From positions 1 to 64,000 of the forward strand of contig JALMLS010000056.1 in the NCBI GenBank assembly GCA_038496445.1: 64,000 nucleotides of DNA, in the 5' to 3' direction. The notes beneath the pieces were generated by a model. It saw nothing but the letters and a program-made list of their open reading frames with translations. It did no database searches and had not been told where the DNA came from. A program made the position numbers and the translations under genes. The DNA comes from Trichosphaerium sp. ATCC 40318. Its lineage: Eukaryota; Protista; Tubulinea. Below, piece by piece: positions 5,667 to 38,705 of this stretch; within the stretch, counting starts at the first letter, position 1, and every line of letters begins with the position of its first letter.

Positions 5667-7261
5667 TCAGTAAAATTTTGTTCTTGTTTTATGTATTGGT
5701 ATGTCTACTTGTTCTTCCATCTCCTTTGCAAGATCCCATAGGTAAAAATCTATAACTATTGCATTGAGTAGTTGATTTTTATCAATACTAGGGTCTTCTG
5801 CAATTTGTTTTTTCATTTCTTTTAGAATACACTAAGTAACAACATCAGAACATGTTAAGTCAAATCAAGTTCAATTAAAAACACTCTATAATAATAACAG
5901 TACCTCTACAGCCCATATAGAGTTACCACGAATCTCTAGCTCAATACGCTCACCATGTGATACTTGCGGTGATTCTTTTAGTCTGAAACAGTGTTAAGCC
6001 TTCAAAAAAGAGCATACGATGTACAATGGTGTTTCCTTACCTATTCATAAGTGCAGTTGAGTATGCCATAGCACCTAGATGTACTAGGATTTGAGGAACG
6101 CGATAATCAGCAAACATAGTTATTGTATCAATATCTGTGAACTCTCCTATGCCTTTACCTTCAAAACAAGCCCAAATATCTGCAACAAGAATTTGAACAC
6201 GTTTATAGATTTTAACTATGTACAAAGCATTAGAGAAAAAAATCCATTTGTGACTTGTCATGAATGTCATTATTTTTATAGAATCTTGCCTGATGTTCCT
6301 TCAAATAAGTGTGAATCGTCAAAACAACTAAAATTCTGAACAACAAGGTCTACAAGCTTTTGAGCGCTCTTGTTACTCTGACGAATACAATTGATAAACT
6401 TTCCATCAAATTTATCACAAAGTACAGTTCCTACCTCCTAAACAAGAATAAAAAAAGGTGAGTCTCCAGTCACTAGCTTTTTGCTTTTTCTTGGTTGATT
6501 TTTTTTTGAATTCTGTTTTTGGCAAAATGTGTAGTGTGACATGTCAAGAATCTTGTTTTTGGTGATCAACATCTCTCGATTTAATAAATTTGTGAAAAGG
6601 TTAATGTTGTTGATGTACGTACACGAAGGTTAGAAACGCGTTGGTAAATTAATGCTAACTGTGTTGAAGATGCACTCTTAAATACTTCCTGTACTTGCTC
6701 TTTTGTAATATTTTTGAGGTATTCAGCGGAAGTGAATGGAATGCCTTTCTATTGAAACGAAAAAAATAAAAGTCAAACGAAAATGTTAACAGATCAACTT
6801 CAATTTACCTCTATAGCCCTGTTCATAGCTGCGCAAAGCGACCAATAGCCTAATTACGTTAGATCTACGAGAAATAAGAGATATTGCGTGCCAGTGTATT
6901 TTTTGTTGTTGTAATCGACTGTAAATGGTATATCTTTCGATAAATGGTAAGATTGACGCCTAGTAAAGCATTCCTACCTGTATCCGAATAAAATGAAAAG
7001 TTTAAGGTGTCTAGTATAAATATCCACTCCACAGTCTCCTCTGTAATAATACTGGGGTGTTGTTCTGGTTTACGCCATGAAGCTAATGAATACTTCTGTT
7101 TTTTCCACACATTGCATATCTACGCCTCTAGAGTTGGTACAAACGAGTAGACGAGCGCATGACCGCACCTGCTGTGCTGTACGAGCTACACCCTCGGGAT
7201 TAACTGACACGTGTACAGAGTGCTTATTTATGAACTCAGCCGACTCTAGTACGCTTCTCAT
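5667..7261 (-). CDS. QNG1: Queuosine 5'-phosphate N-glycosylase / queuosine salvage protein (DUF2419)
   Basis: Spliced product contains [60 protein letters not shown] and the C-terminal [10 protein letters not shown], all characteristic of the family. Confidence 0.93.
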
Positions 7262-14818: not shown

Positions 14819-17800
14819 ATGCAGTTCTCACTGATATTTTTATGTTTATTATTACCTGCAGCATACGGCTTTATTGCTGCTGAAGACAGAGAAGTTATTA
14901 GGGATTTTATTAATGCTTGGCAAAATGTCCCAGTTGAATGGCAGGAAAGCGATATTGATAACGCCTGTGAATGGTCAGGTATCTTATGTGTTCCAACCGG
15001 ACATGTTGTGACGTTGTACGTTGTTTGGCGTGTCATTATCTTTTATTGTTTATTATACAAATACCTCCCTTATCACCTACTACGCGGGGTTGAGGGCGCA
15101 TTCGCGCGACGAATAATTAATGAAAAACAATATTTAGGAGCTTAAACAATCAAGGCCTCGTTGGTGTATTACCAGCTTCTATAAGTGATTTAACGCATTT
15201 GTTCATGATGTATGTAAATTAAACCCAACACAAAAAAAAAATAAGGCCCACGTGAAAACGAGACGTGCAAAACATAAAACAAGTTTATTGGCATCTAAAA
15301 CTGATATTAACGTAGTAATTTATCGGGAAACCGGCTGCACGGACCTATCCCACCAGAAGTTATCAACCTAACACAGCTCATAGTACTGTACGGTTTTAGA
15401 TGGTAATATGTGGTGGGTAGCTGACGCGATATTTAGTGATTTGGGAGACAATGCATTTACGGGCCAGATACCATCTATGCTTGGTCATATGCATTTACAA
15501 GCACTGTACGACTACTAGGGATGACAATCAATTACAATATTTATTTTTTTCTCGGTTTGTAGATACTTAAACAATAATCAATTGGATGGAGGGATACCAA
15601 GCACTCTCTTTACTCCGAATTCTAGCCTAGTTATTGTGTACGTTCAAATGCAACTAGCGCCGCCCAGAAGTAAATAATACGTTAATAAATCTATTTGTAG
15701 GCAGCTACAGGACAACAACTTATCTGGTAAAGTTCCTCCTTCCATAGCTCATAATTCTGGTCTGCGAAGCATGTAAGTACTTACCTAAATGATAAGCATC
15801 ATCAATGCCATTGTACTGTATTTCTTACGCATATCAAGATTTCTAGAGAACAATGTACAATTATCTGGATGTTTTCCTGGCATAGAAGAAGAGACCTTGC
15901 GAGGATGGTAATACTTTGCTGAAGCTAATCTACAAAAAAAAAAATTGTCCCAGAAATCCTTTTTCTTTCTATTTCTATAAACATACACCAAACAGCAATA
16001 CTATTGCGTACAAACAAGTACTTATTTCCGATAAACAAGAAACAGCCTTTTGGGTTATTTATTTCTTGTTTGTTGTCAAACACGTTCTTGCGGTAGAAAC
16101 CCAGTATTTATAAACGCCGATAAACAAACTACACTATTTATTTCCCCGATCAAAATAAAAACTCTATTTTTGTAGCGATCTTACTGGCACTTCCATAACG
16201 TGTTCTGGTGAAGAATGTGACTGCATTCCGCAAAGATGTTTCTCAAAAGGATGTCAGCGTGGTGCGTAATAACCAAAACAAGAAAAACAAAAAAAAGAAG
16301 AACTTACATTGACAAGGTGATAGTACTTCCGCAAAGATCTGCGGTATTGACGAACCAGTTTTTTTCGATATGACACCCACAGAGGCATCTACAAGTAATA
16401 AACACAACGAGTAAACACTGGGAGTTTACTTGCTTACTTTTTTTTGTAGCAAGCGCGCCAACGTTATCACCAACATTAGTTCCTATTACAACCACACCTC
16501 CACCTATGGACGCACCAACTGATGCCCCAACGGAAGCACCAACGGATGCGCCAACGGAAGCACCAACGGATGCGCCAACGGATGCACCAACAGACACCCC
16601 AACTGATGCGCCAACGGACGCACCAACGGATGCACCAACAGATGTGCCTACAGCAGAACCAACGAGCTCTCCTACAGAAGTTCCAACAGCGCCACCAACG
16701 TTGCAGCCGACTGACTCACCCACAACACCACCAACGGAAGCACCTACTAATGAGCCAACTGACGCACCAACAAATCCACCCACGGAAGCACCTACTAATG
16801 AGCCAACTGAAGCACCTACAGATAGTCCTACAGAAGTACCTACGCCAGAACCAACTGTTACCCCAACACAATCACCTACAGAGGTGCCAACAGTAGCCCC
16901 AACAGAAGCTCCCACCGAAGCTCCAACAAGTACGCCAACAACAAAAACAAAGCCAGCTAACACATTACAAGACGAACCAACTGAAGCGCCTACAGACAGT
17001 CCTACTGAAACTCCTACACCAGAACCAACTGAAACGCCAACGGCTCCACCCACGAATACTCCCACAACATTGGTTCCTACAAATTCACCGACACTACCTC
17101 CAACAGTCGCACCAACAACTGAAACACCAACTACAGATACGCCAACATCAAGTCCAACAGTTGCTCCAACAAGTCCCCCAACACGTATTGGTAACGGCGG
17201 AGGAGGATTACCACCAAACTTCACATTACCACCATTTGGTTTACCTCCAACAAGTACACAACCGATTTTCTTTTTCTTCAAATTTCCTTCAGAGATCTTA
17301 ACCATTTTCTCTTTTTTTTGTAGATGCCCCATCCACTGCACCACCAACTGAGGAATCGCCTCCTTCAACCAACCCACCAACTACTCAACCACCCACAAAT
17401 CAACCTACTACGGAATCACCAACAACGGTTGTACCTGCTACAAGATCTCCTATAGATCCAAAGGATCCGCCACCATTTAGCTTGCCTCCGTTACCACCTT
17501 TTCCAACATTGCCACCTTCTCTACAGCCCTCTGTCCCTCCGATTCCAAACCCCACAACAGAACCAACAACAGCAGCTCCCACGGAAGCTCCTAAACCACC
17601 TGTTCCAACACCTGTTCCAACACCTACGCCATCAACTCCAATAGCTACTGAAGCACCTACAATCAAACAAGAACCTTCAGATTCACCAACAAGGACTTTG
17701 AGTCCTACACCTACTCCACCCTCAATCATCGCACCAGCTCCTAGTAGCATTCAAGTAAGTTATTTACTCAATACAAAGGATATTAAAACAATCATTAGCC

Positions 17801-18749: not shown

Positions 18750-19572
18750 TTATCTTGTTATTTGTCTAACTACTAAATGACCATTGTCCCAACTCTTGTA
18801 TTCTCCATGTAGTTTTCCATTGACATAGTTGCTCTGAACCCACAATTGACCATTTTCATGCCACCTCTTGAAGATCCCTTCTCGTTTACCATTAGCGTAA
18901 CTGGTCTGCTCCCACAATTGGCCATCATAATACCACCTCTTGTACTCTCCATGTAGTTTTTCATTGACATAGTTGCTCTGAACCCACAATTGGCCATTTT
19001 CATGCCACCTCTTGAGGATCCCTTTTCGTTTACCATTAGCGTAACTGGTCTGCTCCCACAATTGGCCATTATCATACCACCTCTTGTACTCGCCTTCTCG
19101 TTTGCCATCGATATAATTAACCTGCTGCTTCAATTGTCCATTTTCATACCACTTCTTGTATTCTCCATGTTGTTTACCATTGACATAATTACATTGTAAA
19201 CTCAGTTGGCCATTTGAATACCAAATCTTGCATTCACCATGCTCTTTTCCATGTTCCCAATACTGTCTACAAACCAATTGGTTTATTCTACTCTGCCATT
19301 TTCCATGTTTGTTCATCTTATCATCGTACCTTGTCATCATTGCCGCCTGTTTCGAAAGAAGCGGCCAAATTAAATACAGTGACGTGTCTAAATCGATAAT
19401 ATCAAGTTGAATCTCCACTGGAAGGCATAAAAGATGGCAATCATTTGATTGTAAAGTAAATCCCTATTAGTAATTAGATCCTTAATTTGATGATTAAGTA
19501 TGTTAATACCTTGGATGGGCCAGTGTTGGTATATGTCAGTATTCTGGATACAATATCAACAAAAGAAATCAT
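18750..19572 (-). CDS. F-box-like plus MORN-variant (YwqK-like) repeat protein
   Basis: Short 5' exon MISFVDIVSRILTYTNTGPSK, a 46-nt GT-AG intron (19464-19509), then LLCLPVEIQLDII (F-box-like start) and about 7 repeats of GEYKxWYxNGQLxxQxNYxNGKxx in one long exon. A near-identical 144-bp duplication lies at about 18800-19090. Confidence 0.8.
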
Positions 19573-33380: not shown

Positions 33381-36300
33381 ATGAAACAACTACCAAACCA
33401 AAACAAAGAGACTCTTGGTCTTTTATCCACTGAAAGGAATAGAAGACACTTCCGTGTTGGAAAATTTACAGCAATAGTTGTTGGAGTTCTACTGGTAGTA
33501 ACAGTTGCTCTTGTAATCACTGTACCCCTCGTAGTTACTTCTTCAAATCATGTAGAAGGAAATCAACGCTCTAAAATATCTAAACATATATGCTCTGGTG
33601 CGCTTCGAGCCTAGGAACTATCTAAACACAACTTATATGTAAAAAAGGCAAAGGTTACATTTTCCCAGACACGAACATGCGTATGCTTCCCCTGTCACGA
33701 AGGATCTGATTGCTCAGTGTCTATACCAAGTTGTAAAATAGATACTACGGGCAAGGTTTAAAAACTAACCAATCACGTGTTGACTAGTACCAGGAACATC
33801 ATTACCACTTCTATCTGCTTTTTGGAATACTAAAGAAGAAAAGTTTACTGAACTCCAGTCGTATCGCGTGCCATATGAAGAAGAGCTACAAGATCCTTTT
33901 ACGAAAACAGGGTACTGTATTGGTGCAAGACTCCCTATTCGCGTATGTTCAACAAGGTGTTATTTTAATACCCACAAAGTTTTGTATACAGGATGCACTG
34001 TTTGCGCTCCACGAAGAGTTTTTGAATATTGAAGCAAGTGAACAATGTAACTTTGTTATAGGAGTTGGAAAGGTATGTAACACGAGAATTGAACTTGTAG
34101 CTCACAAGTCATTCTAGGGAATGCTTATTGCGGGCGCTAATTACGTGTACTCGCAACGTAGAGGTACTTCATAGTTTAGTTTGGTAATGCGGAATAATCG
34201 GTTTCTGAAAGGGAACATTGTTAATGACATGTACTCGAAGGCGCCATATTCAATACATAACAAAGAGTTTTGTGAGTTCGCTGACAAACGTTGCAAATGG
34301 ACTCCAAATGAACCATCAAAGGACAAACTATATGAGGTAATTGCTATTTTAGTATTGGCTTAACCAATTTGCTTTTTTAACTTTACTAGGTTGTCTTGGC
34401 GCCTACATACACCACTGGAATGTATGGTAAACGAAATTTTACAAACAATGATTATTGGATTGAAGACAATGTATGTCTTGTGGTTGAATATTTTGGCTTT
34501 TTACTTTACTATTTAGACTTTGAATTGGCCATTATGGAGGAAAGGAGATCTTTCTAGAAATGCTCCCATTCACGTGTTTGACATTGAAGCTGTCACAGGT
34601 CAGACTTCAATGTACGTGGAGACTAGGGAATCTACATTTTCTTATTTTTTTCCTCATTTTAATGCTTGGTAAAGGAGTTTTGGATGGGCGTGTATAAGGG
34701 ATCCTACTGTTGCGTATGAGATATCTCGTTATGTCAGGTCGAACGCGATCCATGTAAGCATAGATACTGTATTCAGATCAATTACAATGATGAAATATGT
34801 ATTGGAAAACAAAAAGGAATACGTGTCGTGGGTAAACAACGAGATGAAGAATAGATGGTCAACAATGGAACAATTATTTGGTAAGTTCGTTTTTTGTTTC
34901 TTCTCAGGCGTTTTTGTTAGTCTGTTAACTGTTTGATTGCTTGTAGATATGAATACAGATTTCTCTATTACTAGTAAAGAAGGATCTCCGTTTTTAAGGA
35001 TTAAATGTCATAAACTGAATAGCCTAGATTGCGCGTCTCACTTTAAAGAACGTGACATTATTGTCGCAAAGTACTTCTCAGTATTTTCCCATTTTAAAGG
35101 TTGTTTATTAACAGTTACAACAAATTGCGGAGGCGATTTTGGGGTTACTGGAGTACCTGGATACATCCGTATAAACGTTGCACTTCATGATGATACATTT
35201 GGCATTTTGAGGCAGAAACTACAACAAGCAATAGGAGGAAACTATGAAACAATGACAGAACATGTAATTTACTATTTTGTTTGTTGTCTCCAACTTACGT
35301 ATTTTACAAGGTTCCTGTTCCTGTCCCGGAGAATTTGATGTCTTCAAAACAAAAGAAAGTTGAGTGCATTAACGGGATTGTTTACCCTGATACTGGTGAT
35401 TGTACATGTTTCCCTTGCTTCATAGGTGGCGATTGCTCTGTTTTTGATAGGAACTGTCACGTGAATGCGTCTTCTGGTACTCTTTCTTGAATAGTTCCAA
35501 CAAAATTTATCAAGTAATTCGAAACAACTCACCAACTATCTTTCACGTGCTTTTGCTATTACTCCAGAGTAACCTATATTTAGGTCAACCGTACTTGATG
35601 TCGAGGTGGTTTCACGAAAACATAGAGCGCTTAAACATCCCAGGTACTTTGTTGTTCAAGCACTGTGCAACCCACAACACTAACATCATTTCGTAGAGGT
35701 AGTACTACCTCTCAACTACAGGTGATATTATTATTCTGCTTGAGCTACTTACTAGGTGTCTACAAATAGATTTGAGGAAAAACAACTTGGTGTTGCAACA
35801 TTAGGAAGTGAAGACACTCCCGGACTTGTTGGTGCTTTGAAATCAGCAATCATTAAAGCTCACAACAAGTACGGCAATATTCTGGTAGGCAACTTCTCTC
35901 CTTTCGCATAATAGAGGTCTCATTTGTACAGGATCCAGAAAAAAAGTATCTGGTGATGGGTAACGGAGCAAGGCAACTTACAGCGGCAGCGTTTTATGCT
36001 ACATCAAAGCGTCTAAAAGGTACTTTGAATTGTATTTGCAAACGAAAGGTCAGAATTTATTAATCGGTTTCTTTTAGATAGTGTACAAATGTTTGTGAGG
36101 CGTCCATACTATTCTTCTTACAAGCCTCAATGTGATAAATTCCCAGAAAGGTGTTCATGGACAAGTGATGGCCCTGACCCAAGTCGTACTTTCGAAGTAT
36201 TGACAACTCCAAATAATCCAAGTGGTGACAACAGAGATCCATCTGTTCCAGGCCAATTCACATACATGAGAGATCACGCATATTATTGGAAAGTTGCTGT

Positions 36301-37355
36301 TTAGTTTTCGGTCTAATGGAGTGATTTTAGGCCTTGGTTTGTACCTTACGGAGTAGAGAAAAAAGATGGACCAATCATTGTTCACACATTCACAAAGATG
36401 ACAGGTATCCTTTGATTGATTTTGTTTCAAAACCTCTGACACGAGTTGATGGATTTTTTAGGACATGCTGGAGCGCACGTGATTCAATTTTTTTTCCTAT
36501 TTAGTTGACGCGTGGATAGTCGGTTTGGTTGGGCGTGGGTAAAGGATAAGGCCACTGCAGATCTAATGGCTGATTTTGTTACAACTCAGTCGAAACCTAT
36601 CGGAATTACTGCAGCGTACAGGTACACAATTGTTACCCAAGCTGATTTATTTACAATCTGACTAGAGCTCTCCGCATTTTTGAGTTCATGGGTACATCCA
36701 CAGGTGATGTTTTCAGCAAGGAAGTTAAGGTATATATTCTAGTCAAAAAGCAAGCTAACATTGTTCTCTCAGGCGATTCTTAAAGAGTTCTGGGATGGAG
36801 TACTTTTGGCAAGCGCAGAGAATCCAAACAGTGGGTTCGAAATTGCATCAACTCCAAATACTTGTTACTTATGGTGAATCATTAAATGACTACACAAGTA
36901 TCTGATCCTATCTAGGTTAAAATGTAACGACTATACAAGCACTGAGTGTTATGATTTATTTGATGGACAAGGAATAGTAGGCCAAAAAGGTGATGTGTTT
37001 GGCATGGGTATGTAAAAACCTTTTTTTTACAACGCCACTATTCTTACGATTATCGTAACACATGACAATTGTAAACGCTTTATTACAACTAGTTGTATAA
37101 GCCTACAGCTGAAAACATCACTCGGGCTAATCAAGCATTTGCAACTATTCTATTTGAGTCTTTGTTTAACTAACCACGTGACTAGGTGATCCAGAATTAA
37201 AGCCTGGATACTTTAGAATAAACCTCACACTTGAGAAGACAGGTCTATTACTTGTAAGAGATCGTGTCATTGAAATATTTAAAGGAAATACTACTCGGGT
37301 GTTTCCATACTCAAACATGGTTCAAGATGATGACTTTTTGTTGAGTGTCGGGTAA
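33381..37355 (+). CDS. Membrane-anchored tandem alliinase / tryptophan-aminotransferase-related (TAA1/TAR-like) PLP enzyme with two EGF plus catalytic units
   Basis: TM AIVVGVLLVVTVALVITVPLVV; EGF motifs CVCFPCHEGSDCS and CTCFPCFIGGDCS. Unit 2 has H..YGN, LVMGNGARQL..AA.YA, PYYSSY, TPNNPSG, DHAYYWP and TFTKMTGHAGARFGWAWVKD. The units are joined by a phase-0 intron at about 35264-35310. Confidence 0.85.
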
Positions 37356-37612: not shown

Positions 37613-38705
37613 TTAGTAGTAAGGAATCCAAGTTATGCCATATGCCTCAACGTATTCTTTTGTAATAAGGGTTTCATGACTCTCGAGTGTTTTGAGAGAA
37701 GTCAAGTGTTTCAAACAATCGTTTGTAATCGAAGAACAAAAAAAGAGTATCAAATGTTCAAGATTGATCAAATGCTTGAAAACAGAGTCTGTTACTTCAG
37801 AACAATTATTCAAACGTAACTTCTTGACATTGACCAATGATTTGAGTCCATCATCTGTTATTGATTGTCCTTTGAAAATAGTAACAGTGTGGACATTACC
37901 AAGGTGTTCGAACCACCAGTTTTCTGGGGACATTATTGTAATTTCATGTGCATCTTTGAGTGCCTTTATTCCTTTACCTCTAATATTCGGACAGTTCCAT
38001 ATATTAATTGTGTGTACACCCCTGAGTGCAGTTAATGAATCATCTGTTATCTTTGTGGAAGCCAAGTCAATGGTGTGAATGGTGTGCTTGCCTCCTTGTA
38101 CTAATGTAAGGATACCTGAGTCTGTAATGTTTGATTCTCTCAAACTTATTGATTTAACACCAGAAAGGCAACTCAACTCATCACGTGATAGATCCAACCA
38201 ACTACAATCAATTATTGTGTTTTTAAGAAACGGACTGCCTTTGAGGACGCTACATTCTGACGATTCTTTCAAATTGATTTCAAAAAGAGCCAATTTTATT
38301 GCGAATGATGTTATGTAATCACGTGAGAAACTGTAGATGCATTAATACGTTGTTTTTTGTTCAAATGGCGTAAAAGACGTTAATGTCTCTGGTGTCAAAT
38401 CGCCAAGTGATTTCTCTTGGTTGGCATGCACCAAACTACGTTTGCCTTGATAAACATACCAGCCTACAGGCTGTTATTTTACAAAACAAAGAAAAATGCA
38501 TCGATAGTGTTGATTTACCTAAACTCTGTAAGCAACAAAAGTGCCCATAATATCACAATAGTACCACTCATGTATGGTCCTAACCTTCGTCTTGGTTTGT
38601 TTGTAATAGCTGTCACTTACCACTATAAACGCTTTTTGGTACAGGCGTCATCATTTTCTGTTTGAAACGCATTTTATCTATTTTTCTCGACCCTTTGCTT
38701 CCCAT
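37613..38705 (-). CDS. Leucine-rich repeat protein (AMN1/F-box-LRR-like 'VHT' repeats); 5' exons uncertain, possible MGSKGS myristoylation start
   Basis: Uninterrupted exon of about 650 bp with repeats ITDDSLTALRGVHTINI, ITDDGLKSLVNVKKLRLNNCSEVTD; upstream ATG at 38705. Confidence 0.7.

Follow-up and report, generated by a model that had tools for sequence, protein, structure and literature searches.

The stretch analysed here (the window) comprises 64,000 nucleotides of contig JALMLS010000056.1 from Trichosphaerium sp. ATCC 40318, positions 1 to 64,000, and is AT-rich (about 38% GC) and intron-rich. On its plus strand, at 33381-37355, lies an intron-rich eukaryotic gene made of two successive units, each consisting of an epidermal growth factor (EGF)-like module followed by an Alliinase_C domain. 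The open stretches of this region are short exons, bounded by an ATG at 33381 and a TAA at 37353-37355. In a Pfam comparison of single exons, Alliinase_C (PF04864) matched exon 9 of unit 1 (34673-34933; 1.9e-9, 37.4 bits) and exon 16 of unit 2 (36029-36301; 1.1e-6, 28.3 bits), both above the curated cut-off of 22 bits, and matched unit 2 a second time at 36509-36658 (3.5e-4, 20 bits). EGF_alliinase (PF04863) scored below its cut-off of 25 bits in both units, at 33615-33758 (9.6e-5, 23.1 bits) and at 35248-35487 (2.1e-3, 18.9 bits), with each exon spanning just the last 23-29 of the 55 profile positions. Per-exon translation gave six Cys in both EGF-like modules and a 24-residue hydrophobic anchor at about 33465-33536. 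These matches agree with an earlier sequence-only reading of the window, which had described two units of an EGF module plus an enzyme of the pyridoxal phosphate (PLP)-dependent kind; the two-unit design is real and far beyond chance. The predicted protein has a type II membrane anchor at its N-terminus; EGF-like module 1 and PLP-fold unit 1 come next, and a Pro-rich linker of about 20 residues joins them to EGF-like module 2 and PLP-fold unit 2.

A profile scan of the genome (70 Mb, 642 contigs) found three Alliinase_C loci: the window gene (C35; 37.2 and 24.2 bits), a second two-unit gene (C11; 39.3, 28.5 and 24 bits) and a one-unit gene (C27). Genome searches with unit-specific exons as queries matched only the window gene and C11. 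By tblastx, C11 is colinear with the window gene from ATG to stop, exon by exon, while the introns have diverged. Every junction was placed by demanding equal position and phase in the two copies. The resulting C11 model comprises 23 exons totalling 2673 nt, read as 890 codons free of stops, and its introns (43-74 nt) are all GT-AG bar two that are GC-AG. Exon lengths are equal in both copies save for three: exon 1 of the window copy is shorter by 3 nt, and its exons 2 and 14 carry lesions. This kind of gene is best represented by the C11 copy, with its clean open reading frame (ORF). The features of the window copy are as follows.

33381..33597 (+): exon 1, with the start codon, a short cytosolic tail and the type II signal anchor; Cys-Ser end, donor GT at 33598; 44-61% identical to C11 exon 1
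33648..33750 (+): exon 2, EGF-like module of unit 1 with six Cys; GC donor at 33751; Pfam EGF_alliinase 9.6e-5
33794..35263 (+): exons 3-11, PLP-fold body of unit 1, cofactor site predicted to be dead; exon lengths the same as in C11
33794-33942, 33992-34072, 34118-34163, 34212-34336 (+): exons 3-6, unit 1
34390-34470, 34517-34611, 34675-34880, 34947-35070, 35128-35263 (+): exons 7-11, unit 1
35071..35127 (+): intron 10, 57 nt, stop-free, acceptor TG (junctions compared with C11)
35264..35310 (+): linking intron between units 1 and 2, GT..AG, 47 nt, phase 0
35311-35476 (+): exon 12, Pro-rich linker and EGF-like module of unit 2 with six Cys; EGF_alliinase 2.1e-3
35584-35643 (+): exon 13, unit 2
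35722..35884 (+): exon 14, unit 2; first 46 nt degenerate, remainder conserved
35932-36019 (+): exon 15, unit 2; exons 15-16 hold RPYY (Tyr165 equivalent), TTPNNPSG and DHAYY
36078-36288 (+): exon 16, unit 2; 86% identical to C11; donor GA at 36289-90
36331..36404 (+): exon 17, WPWFVPYGVE...TFTKMT, with the Schiff-base Lys codon at 36395-36397 (aligns to alliinase K251); 96% identical to C11, proportion of non-synonymous differences (pN) 0.02
36462..36474 (+): 13-nt micro-exon GHAG, required for TGHAGARFGW; then a GC-AG intron, donor GCACGT at 36475
36520-36621, 36666-36729, 36773-36873, 36916-37007, 37186-37355 (+): exons 18-22, remainder of unit 2, with RFGW (Arg259 equivalent), YFRINL (Arg401 equivalent) and the stop at 37353-55

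Two peculiarities of this gene family emerged alongside the gene model. GC-AG introns are unusually common in it, with 2 of 22 introns in C11 and two in the window copy (33751 and 36475), and the GCACGT/GCAAGG donors that they usually have may be characteristic of the genome. The 13-nt micro-exon, coding for GHA(G/A) two codons past the catalytic Lys, is kept in both two-unit paralogues (in the C11 copy at 6234-6246 of the reverse complement of L007); the one-unit C27 gene has no intron between Lys and GHS, where the two-unit paralogues have the micro-exon.

We compared the window copy with C11 by counting complete codons per exon and then summing. The ratio of non-synonymous to synonymous substitution rates (dN/dS) was 0.19 for unit 1 (exons 3-11, 343 codons), 0.10 for unit 2 (exons 13 and 15-22, 316 codons) and 0.42 for the linker and second EGF-like module (exon 12, 55 codons), with dS between the paralogues at about 1.2, near saturation. 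Relative to the one-unit outgroup L009, unique changes number 16 in the window copy and 12 in C11; relative to the one-unit outgroup L010 they number 24 and 17. Neither excess is significant. Within unit 1, the best conserved exon is the one that surrounds the dead Lys position (87% identical to C11). Both units and their junction show conservation under purifying selection. The sequence-only reading had stated that a lack of such selection on unit 1 would speak against it; at a dN/dS of 0.19 unit 1 is not decaying, and we reject the view of it as a decaying duplicate.

To place the active-site residues, garlic alliinase numbering was transferred through P0006, a 389-aa one-unit homologue from the library search whose alignments score 236 bits with garlic alliinase and 199 bits with TAA1. 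Unit 2 keeps equivalents of all seven cofactor and substrate contacts of garlic alliinase: Y165 (RPYY), N207 (PNNP), D225 and Y228 (DHAYY), K251 and R259 (TKMTGHAGARFGW) and R401 (YFRINL). Its Schiff-base Lys lies in an S-K-x-T-G-H motif (TFTKMTGHAGARFGW; codon 36395-97), and this stretch aligns to alliinase K251 and R259. Unit 1, which carries the motifs ELQSY, APYS, APTYTTG, DNTLNWP, EAVTGQTSMSFGW and YIRINV, has lost five of the seven contacts (K>A, Y165>S, N207>Y, Y228>L, R259>S) and keeps D225 and R401. The Arg that binds the alpha-carboxylate (alliinase R401) is present in both units, with YFRINL of unit 2 and YIRINV of unit 1 aligning to YVRLSL. The losses in unit 1 are identical in the window copy and in C11. 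By this residue map, unit 1 is a family member by fold and not a PLP enzyme.

The motifs named in the sequence-only reading are all found in the per-exon translation, as TTPNNPSG, DHAYY/WP and TFTKMT/GHAG/ARFGW in unit 2 and as APTYTTG, DN/TLNWP and FDIEAVTGQTS/MSFGW in unit 1. Its observation that unit 1 lacks the Schiff-base Lys, the Asn and the Arg is upheld by the alliinase residue map and holds equally for C11. Its larger picture of a membrane-anchored protein with a dead N-terminal half and an intact C-terminal half also stands, given that C11 has the same layout, that both units are under purifying selection and that the dead unit keeps a Tyr of the kind that acts in trans.

This Tyr deserves separate treatment. 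We take MSY92 of alliinase to be the in-trans Tyr position, contacting the PLP phosphate from the partner subunit; a literature search on alliinase Tyr92 found no paper. In class I aminotransferases, a Tyr from the other subunit holds the PLP phosphate (PMC9309667). Unit 1 keeps the residue as ELQSY, which aligns with LGY of P0006 and through it with alliinase MSY92, and its LQSYRVPY matches SLSYRVPY of L010. The aligned residue in unit 2 of C11 is Phe (NIPGEPNSVFSSD vs TAA1 TIRGCDLMSYFSD), as placed by hand on IxG...SD anchors; MAFFT misplaced the start of exon 14 on short exons, and the hand alignment used instead is weak. In unit 2 of the window copy, the corresponding stretch falls in the degenerate part of exon 14. 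A Tyr on unit 1 together with a Phe or a degenerate stretch in unit 2 is suggestive of the complementarity to be expected if unit 1 pairs with unit 2 and only one site is live.

The window copy itself departs from the C11 model, with three frame-breaking indels and two disabled splice sites where C11 has none. In a DNA alignment with C11, exon 2 has a 2-nt deletion after 33676, which causes a frameshift and a stop near 33705; in the C11 frame the upstream flank differs by 4 synonymous and 0 non-synonymous changes and the downstream flank by 10 and 8. The donor of intron 2 is GC at 33751 in the window and GT in C11, a change that is probably tolerable. Intron 10 ends in TG in place of AG at 35126-27, and no in-frame GT-AG alternative that preserves the exon ends was found for it. 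Exon 14 carries -5 and +4 indels at 35722-35767 and a TAG at 35753, while its old acceptor at 35721 is intact and conserved and its 3' part shows 13 synonymous and 9 non-synonymous differences from C11 over 39 codons. The donor after DHAYYW at 36289-90 is GA in the window and GTAAGT in C11. Two stretches beside lesions, KGYIFPDTN (4 synonymous, 0 non-synonymous differences from C11) and PWFVPYGVE (3 and 0), changed only synonymously, which indicates that they were translated in the C11 frame until recently and that the lesions are young or are errors.

These departures bear on the part of the sequence-only reading that fared less well, namely its single spliced ORF. Such a frame exists cleanly in the 890 codons of C11; in the window it breaks at exon 2, at exon 14, at the TG acceptor and at the GA donor. 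An open frame of 880 codons can be assembled in the window copy by four unusual splice choices, namely a GC donor at 33600, retention of intron 10 (which inserts 19 residues), an in-phase acceptor at 35804 (which costs 27 residues) and the GA donor at 36289. This frame is probably what had been taken for the ORF, and the case is a warning for annotation, as a motif-level reading yielded an ORF that the splice signals of the window copy do not support.

Given five departures against none in C11, two of them substitutions of splice dinucleotides, recent inactivation or a null allele is the more economical account, and we consider it rather probable that the window copy has recently been inactivated or is a null allele. 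The copy may no longer work, the alternative being expression only via unusual splicing. Of the usual marks of an unprocessed pseudogene, it has the frame-breaking indels and lost splice sites relative to an intact paralogue. Relaxed constraint was not found, with dN/dS at 0.10-0.19, a rate not significantly raised and no stops in conserved frames outside exon 14, so any inactivation must be recent.

It is quite conceivable, though not what we favour, that the window copy is instead a working gene for the full two-unit protein, its oddities being assembly errors or being bypassed by splicing. The complete 880-codon frame is available for this, the new AG at 35804 falls exactly in phase, intron 10 has no stop and a length divisible by three, and genuine use of GC-AG introns is seen in this gene family; moreover, about 700 conserved codons hold no stops and have a low dN/dS, and there is no rate acceleration. 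However, all five departures fall in one copy and none in its paralogue, and substitutions of splice dinucleotides, which account for two of them, are atypical of assembly error; the same two grounds let us dismiss assembly error as accounting alone for the whole set. The old acceptor at 35721, being intact and conserved, should still serve and would lead into the broken stretch. The donor at 33600 has a poor context (GGT/GCGCTT), and the rescue that it offers uses a different frame from the one in which the affected stretch shows 4 synonymous and 0 non-synonymous changes. We therefore rejected the 33600 rescue as the historical frame.

With recent damage to the window copy as the preferred account, the case for the protein architecture is best read from C11. 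One Lys-less and one catalytic unit per polypeptide are found cleanly in its 890-codon ORF, and in the window copy only with unusual splicing. Fold-type-I PLP enzymes are obligate dimers, each site of which draws on both subunits. We infer that the two units pair intramolecularly into an asymmetric dimer with one site. Units 1 and 2 would pack like the two subunits of a fold-type-I dimer, making a single-chain asymmetric enzyme with its one active site in unit 2; unit 1 would be a scaffold that lends the in-trans Tyr (ELQSY) to the PLP phosphate of unit 2. From the type II anchor and the Cys-rich modules, the catalytic part is expected to face the lumen or the outside. In such a place a beta-lyase would be more plausible than an aminotransferase, because no keto-acid co-substrate is needed outside the cytosol; the preference is slight, and lyase and aminotransferase chemistry are not distinguishable from the amoeba sequence. 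The products put forward in the sequence-only reading, antimicrobial sulfur compounds or indole-3-pyruvate, are accordingly no more than conjecture.

A different arrangement, which we think unlikely, has no pairing between units 1 and 2: unit 1 would be a PLP-free ligand-binding or regulatory module, and the dimers would form between unit 2 and unit 2 (and unit 1 and unit 1), as in ordinary alliinase. Fold-type-I enzymes are indeed normally homodimers, and the dead-site region is the best conserved exon of unit 1 with the carboxylate-binding Arg kept, which could mean ligand binding beyond scaffolding. Against separate units stand the in-trans Tyr that unit 1 has kept and that unit 2 has apparently replaced by Phe (C11) or lost in a degenerate stretch (window), as well as the linker of 20 residues between homologous dimer-forming folds, which would favour intramolecular pairing, and the precedent of serine palmitoyltransferase (PMC5371807).

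That the units belong to one chain follows from their junction. The linking intron (47 nt in the window, 46 nt in C11) is GT..AG, in phase 0, at the same position and in frame in both copies, and unit 2, which opens on a disulfide-type EGF module, has no start codon, signal or anchor of its own, with no Met before that module in C11. This conserved intron, the 46-47 nt gap and the missing start and signal of unit 2 together indicate one gene, and the gap leaves no room for a terminator and a promoter. Fusion of the two units in one chain, as claimed by the sequence-only reading, is thereby supported through the clean C11 ORF and the conserved position and phase of the linking intron. We reject as hardly credible the notion of two adjacent, unfused genes forming a tandem duplicate pair, because, although an unspliced linking intron would run unit 1 into a stop at 35336-38, the units are separated by just 46-47 nt, both paralogues, at a dS of about 1.2, have kept the intron with GT..AG ends, in phase 0 and in frame, and the EGF module of unit 2 lacks a signal or anchor and, in C11, any Met ahead of it.

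The one-gene structure also carries traces of its origin. Three introns occur at equal position and phase in both units: one follows the EGF module, one lies 11 codons ahead of the A/RPY motif, and one interrupts the codon that precedes (S/R)FGW. All other introns are unit-specific. The one-unit sequences L009 and L010 are similar to unit 1 as well as to unit 2. This pattern fits an origin by tandem duplication of an intron-bearing one-unit gene, fusion, and a later duplication that would have given C11 and C35.

Garlic alliinase (alliin lyase; PDB 1LK9, 2HOR/2HOX) is among the closest known systems, sharing Alliinase_C and, at sub-threshold scores, EGF_alliinase, a six-Cys EGF-like module ahead of a fold-type-I PLP domain, and a place in the secretory pathway. 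However, it is soluble and vacuolar and forms a homodimer of one-unit chains that has two active sites, whereas the amoeba gene encodes two fused units behind a membrane anchor, the first of them predicted to be unable to bind PLP. Arabidopsis TAA1/TAR (PDB 3BWN) has the Alliinase_C fold and the PLP motifs in common with the amoeba gene. TAR2-4 carry an N-terminal anchor. An EGF-type domain is present in TAR3/4 (PMC9309667). These plant enzymes are one-unit proteins, and TAA1 lacks the EGF module that the amoeba gene has. Similarity to PDB chains is low (13-16 bits for the best exon), with TAA1 the best PDB match for exon 16.

To our knowledge, natural fused fold-type-I pairs with one pseudo-enzyme half are few, serine palmitoyltransferase being the textbook case. 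Its partners LCB1 and LCB2 resemble the amoeba units in mechanism, one being Lys-less and the other catalytic, and a passage of PMC5371807, citing Han et al. (2006), describes them as naturally fused in one gene in most Emiliania huxleyi virus strains. Serine palmitoyltransferase is, however, an alpha-oxoamine synthase and not an Alliinase_C protein, with homology limited to the fold type. It departs from the amoeba gene in which of the two units comes first, the live or the dead one, and also in membrane topology and chemistry. Pfam gives Alliinase_C only for the latter, with no homology to alpha-oxoamine synthases found.

Relatives with one unit occur in this genome and in other samples. The C27 gene (G000:C27:285573-289577, L001/L008, minus strand) gives the best Pfam match of the genome (99.8 bits) and has its own membrane anchor, an EGF module, RMSY, PNNPDG, DLVYYWP and SLGKLTGHSAT/RIGW with an intact Lys. 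Outside the genome the closest relatives are L009 and L010, 52-68% identical to exon 16 of unit 2. L010 (Logan SRR28285697, 2414 nt) is AT-rich genomic DNA with introns that encodes an anchor, EGF module and Alliinase_C with an intact Lys and the SY motif; L009 (Logan SRR28211869, 977 nt), a partial contig, covers just the Alliinase_C part, with the Lys intact, and looks like a fragment of a spliced transcript. No second unit is seen in C27, L010, P0006 or L009, the last being too short to tell. The one-unit relatives are presumably ordinary homodimers.

A word search with exon 16 returned no match, and a whole-library HMMER search with it returned only 13 matches, comprising one-unit fragments of at most 68% identity and spurious repeat proteins, with no two-unit relative; the best is a one-unit fragment of 172 aa (57% identity). 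Metagenome and viral contigs, scanned with the exon 16 alignment, gave no relative either. The genome's own proteins lie outside the libraries searched, which makes this absence of two-unit relatives weak evidence. Three long library matches over several stretches (P0002, P0004, P0008) were discarded as unrelated repeat proteins according to Pfam.

The best explanation overall, to which we assign a probability of roughly 0.55, is that the window gene and C11 are two old paralogues of a two-unit alliinase/TAA-family gene of an amoeba-like eukaryote, that their product would form a one-site dimer within a single chain, and that the copy in the window is damaged. Several points weigh against it. 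Each lesion of the window copy has an in-frame bypass and the stops in conserved frames are confined to exon 14, so that the copy may be functional, and GA donors do work efficiently in rare genes. The Tyr>Phe call in unit 2 is a hand alignment to TAA1, and a nearby Tyr (SSDY) could substitute. Finally, conservation is judged from two paralogues of one genome, with no two-unit relative found elsewhere.

Other parts of the window showed features unconnected with this gene. At 16508-17038 there is a strong strand skew (GC 0.45, GC skew -0.32, AT skew +0.21) with 12/24/48-nt tandem repeats, of units such as CCAACAGAAGCA, that look like a Pro/Thr-rich, mucin-like coding repeat. A 72-nt tandem repeat (2.9 copies, 71% match) occupies 18789-18997. 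Directly downstream of the two-unit gene, on the opposite strand (37613-38293, minus), an open frame of 226 aa has leucine-rich-repeat-like periodicity.

If the one-site dimer is real, it would be a second, independent case of such asymmetry, this time in the alliinase/TAA family, and would show how asymmetry evolves. The route would start with a tandem duplication, after which one site was lost and the in-trans residue kept on the dead half alone. Such a protein would moreover offer a ready-made single-chain scaffold for engineering, and an amoeba would have an alliinase-type enzyme at its surface or in its secretory pathway. Tentatively, the two-unit genes (surely C11, perhaps the window copy) may provide the alliinase/TAA clade with its first natural case of an asymmetric dimer within one chain, membrane-anchored and facing outward or the lumen, with exactly one PLP site and a conserved pseudo-enzyme half that would give the in-trans Tyr and the interface. 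The amoeba might use such a protein as a C-S lyase for reactive sulfur compounds, in an allicin-like defence or in prey killing outside plants.

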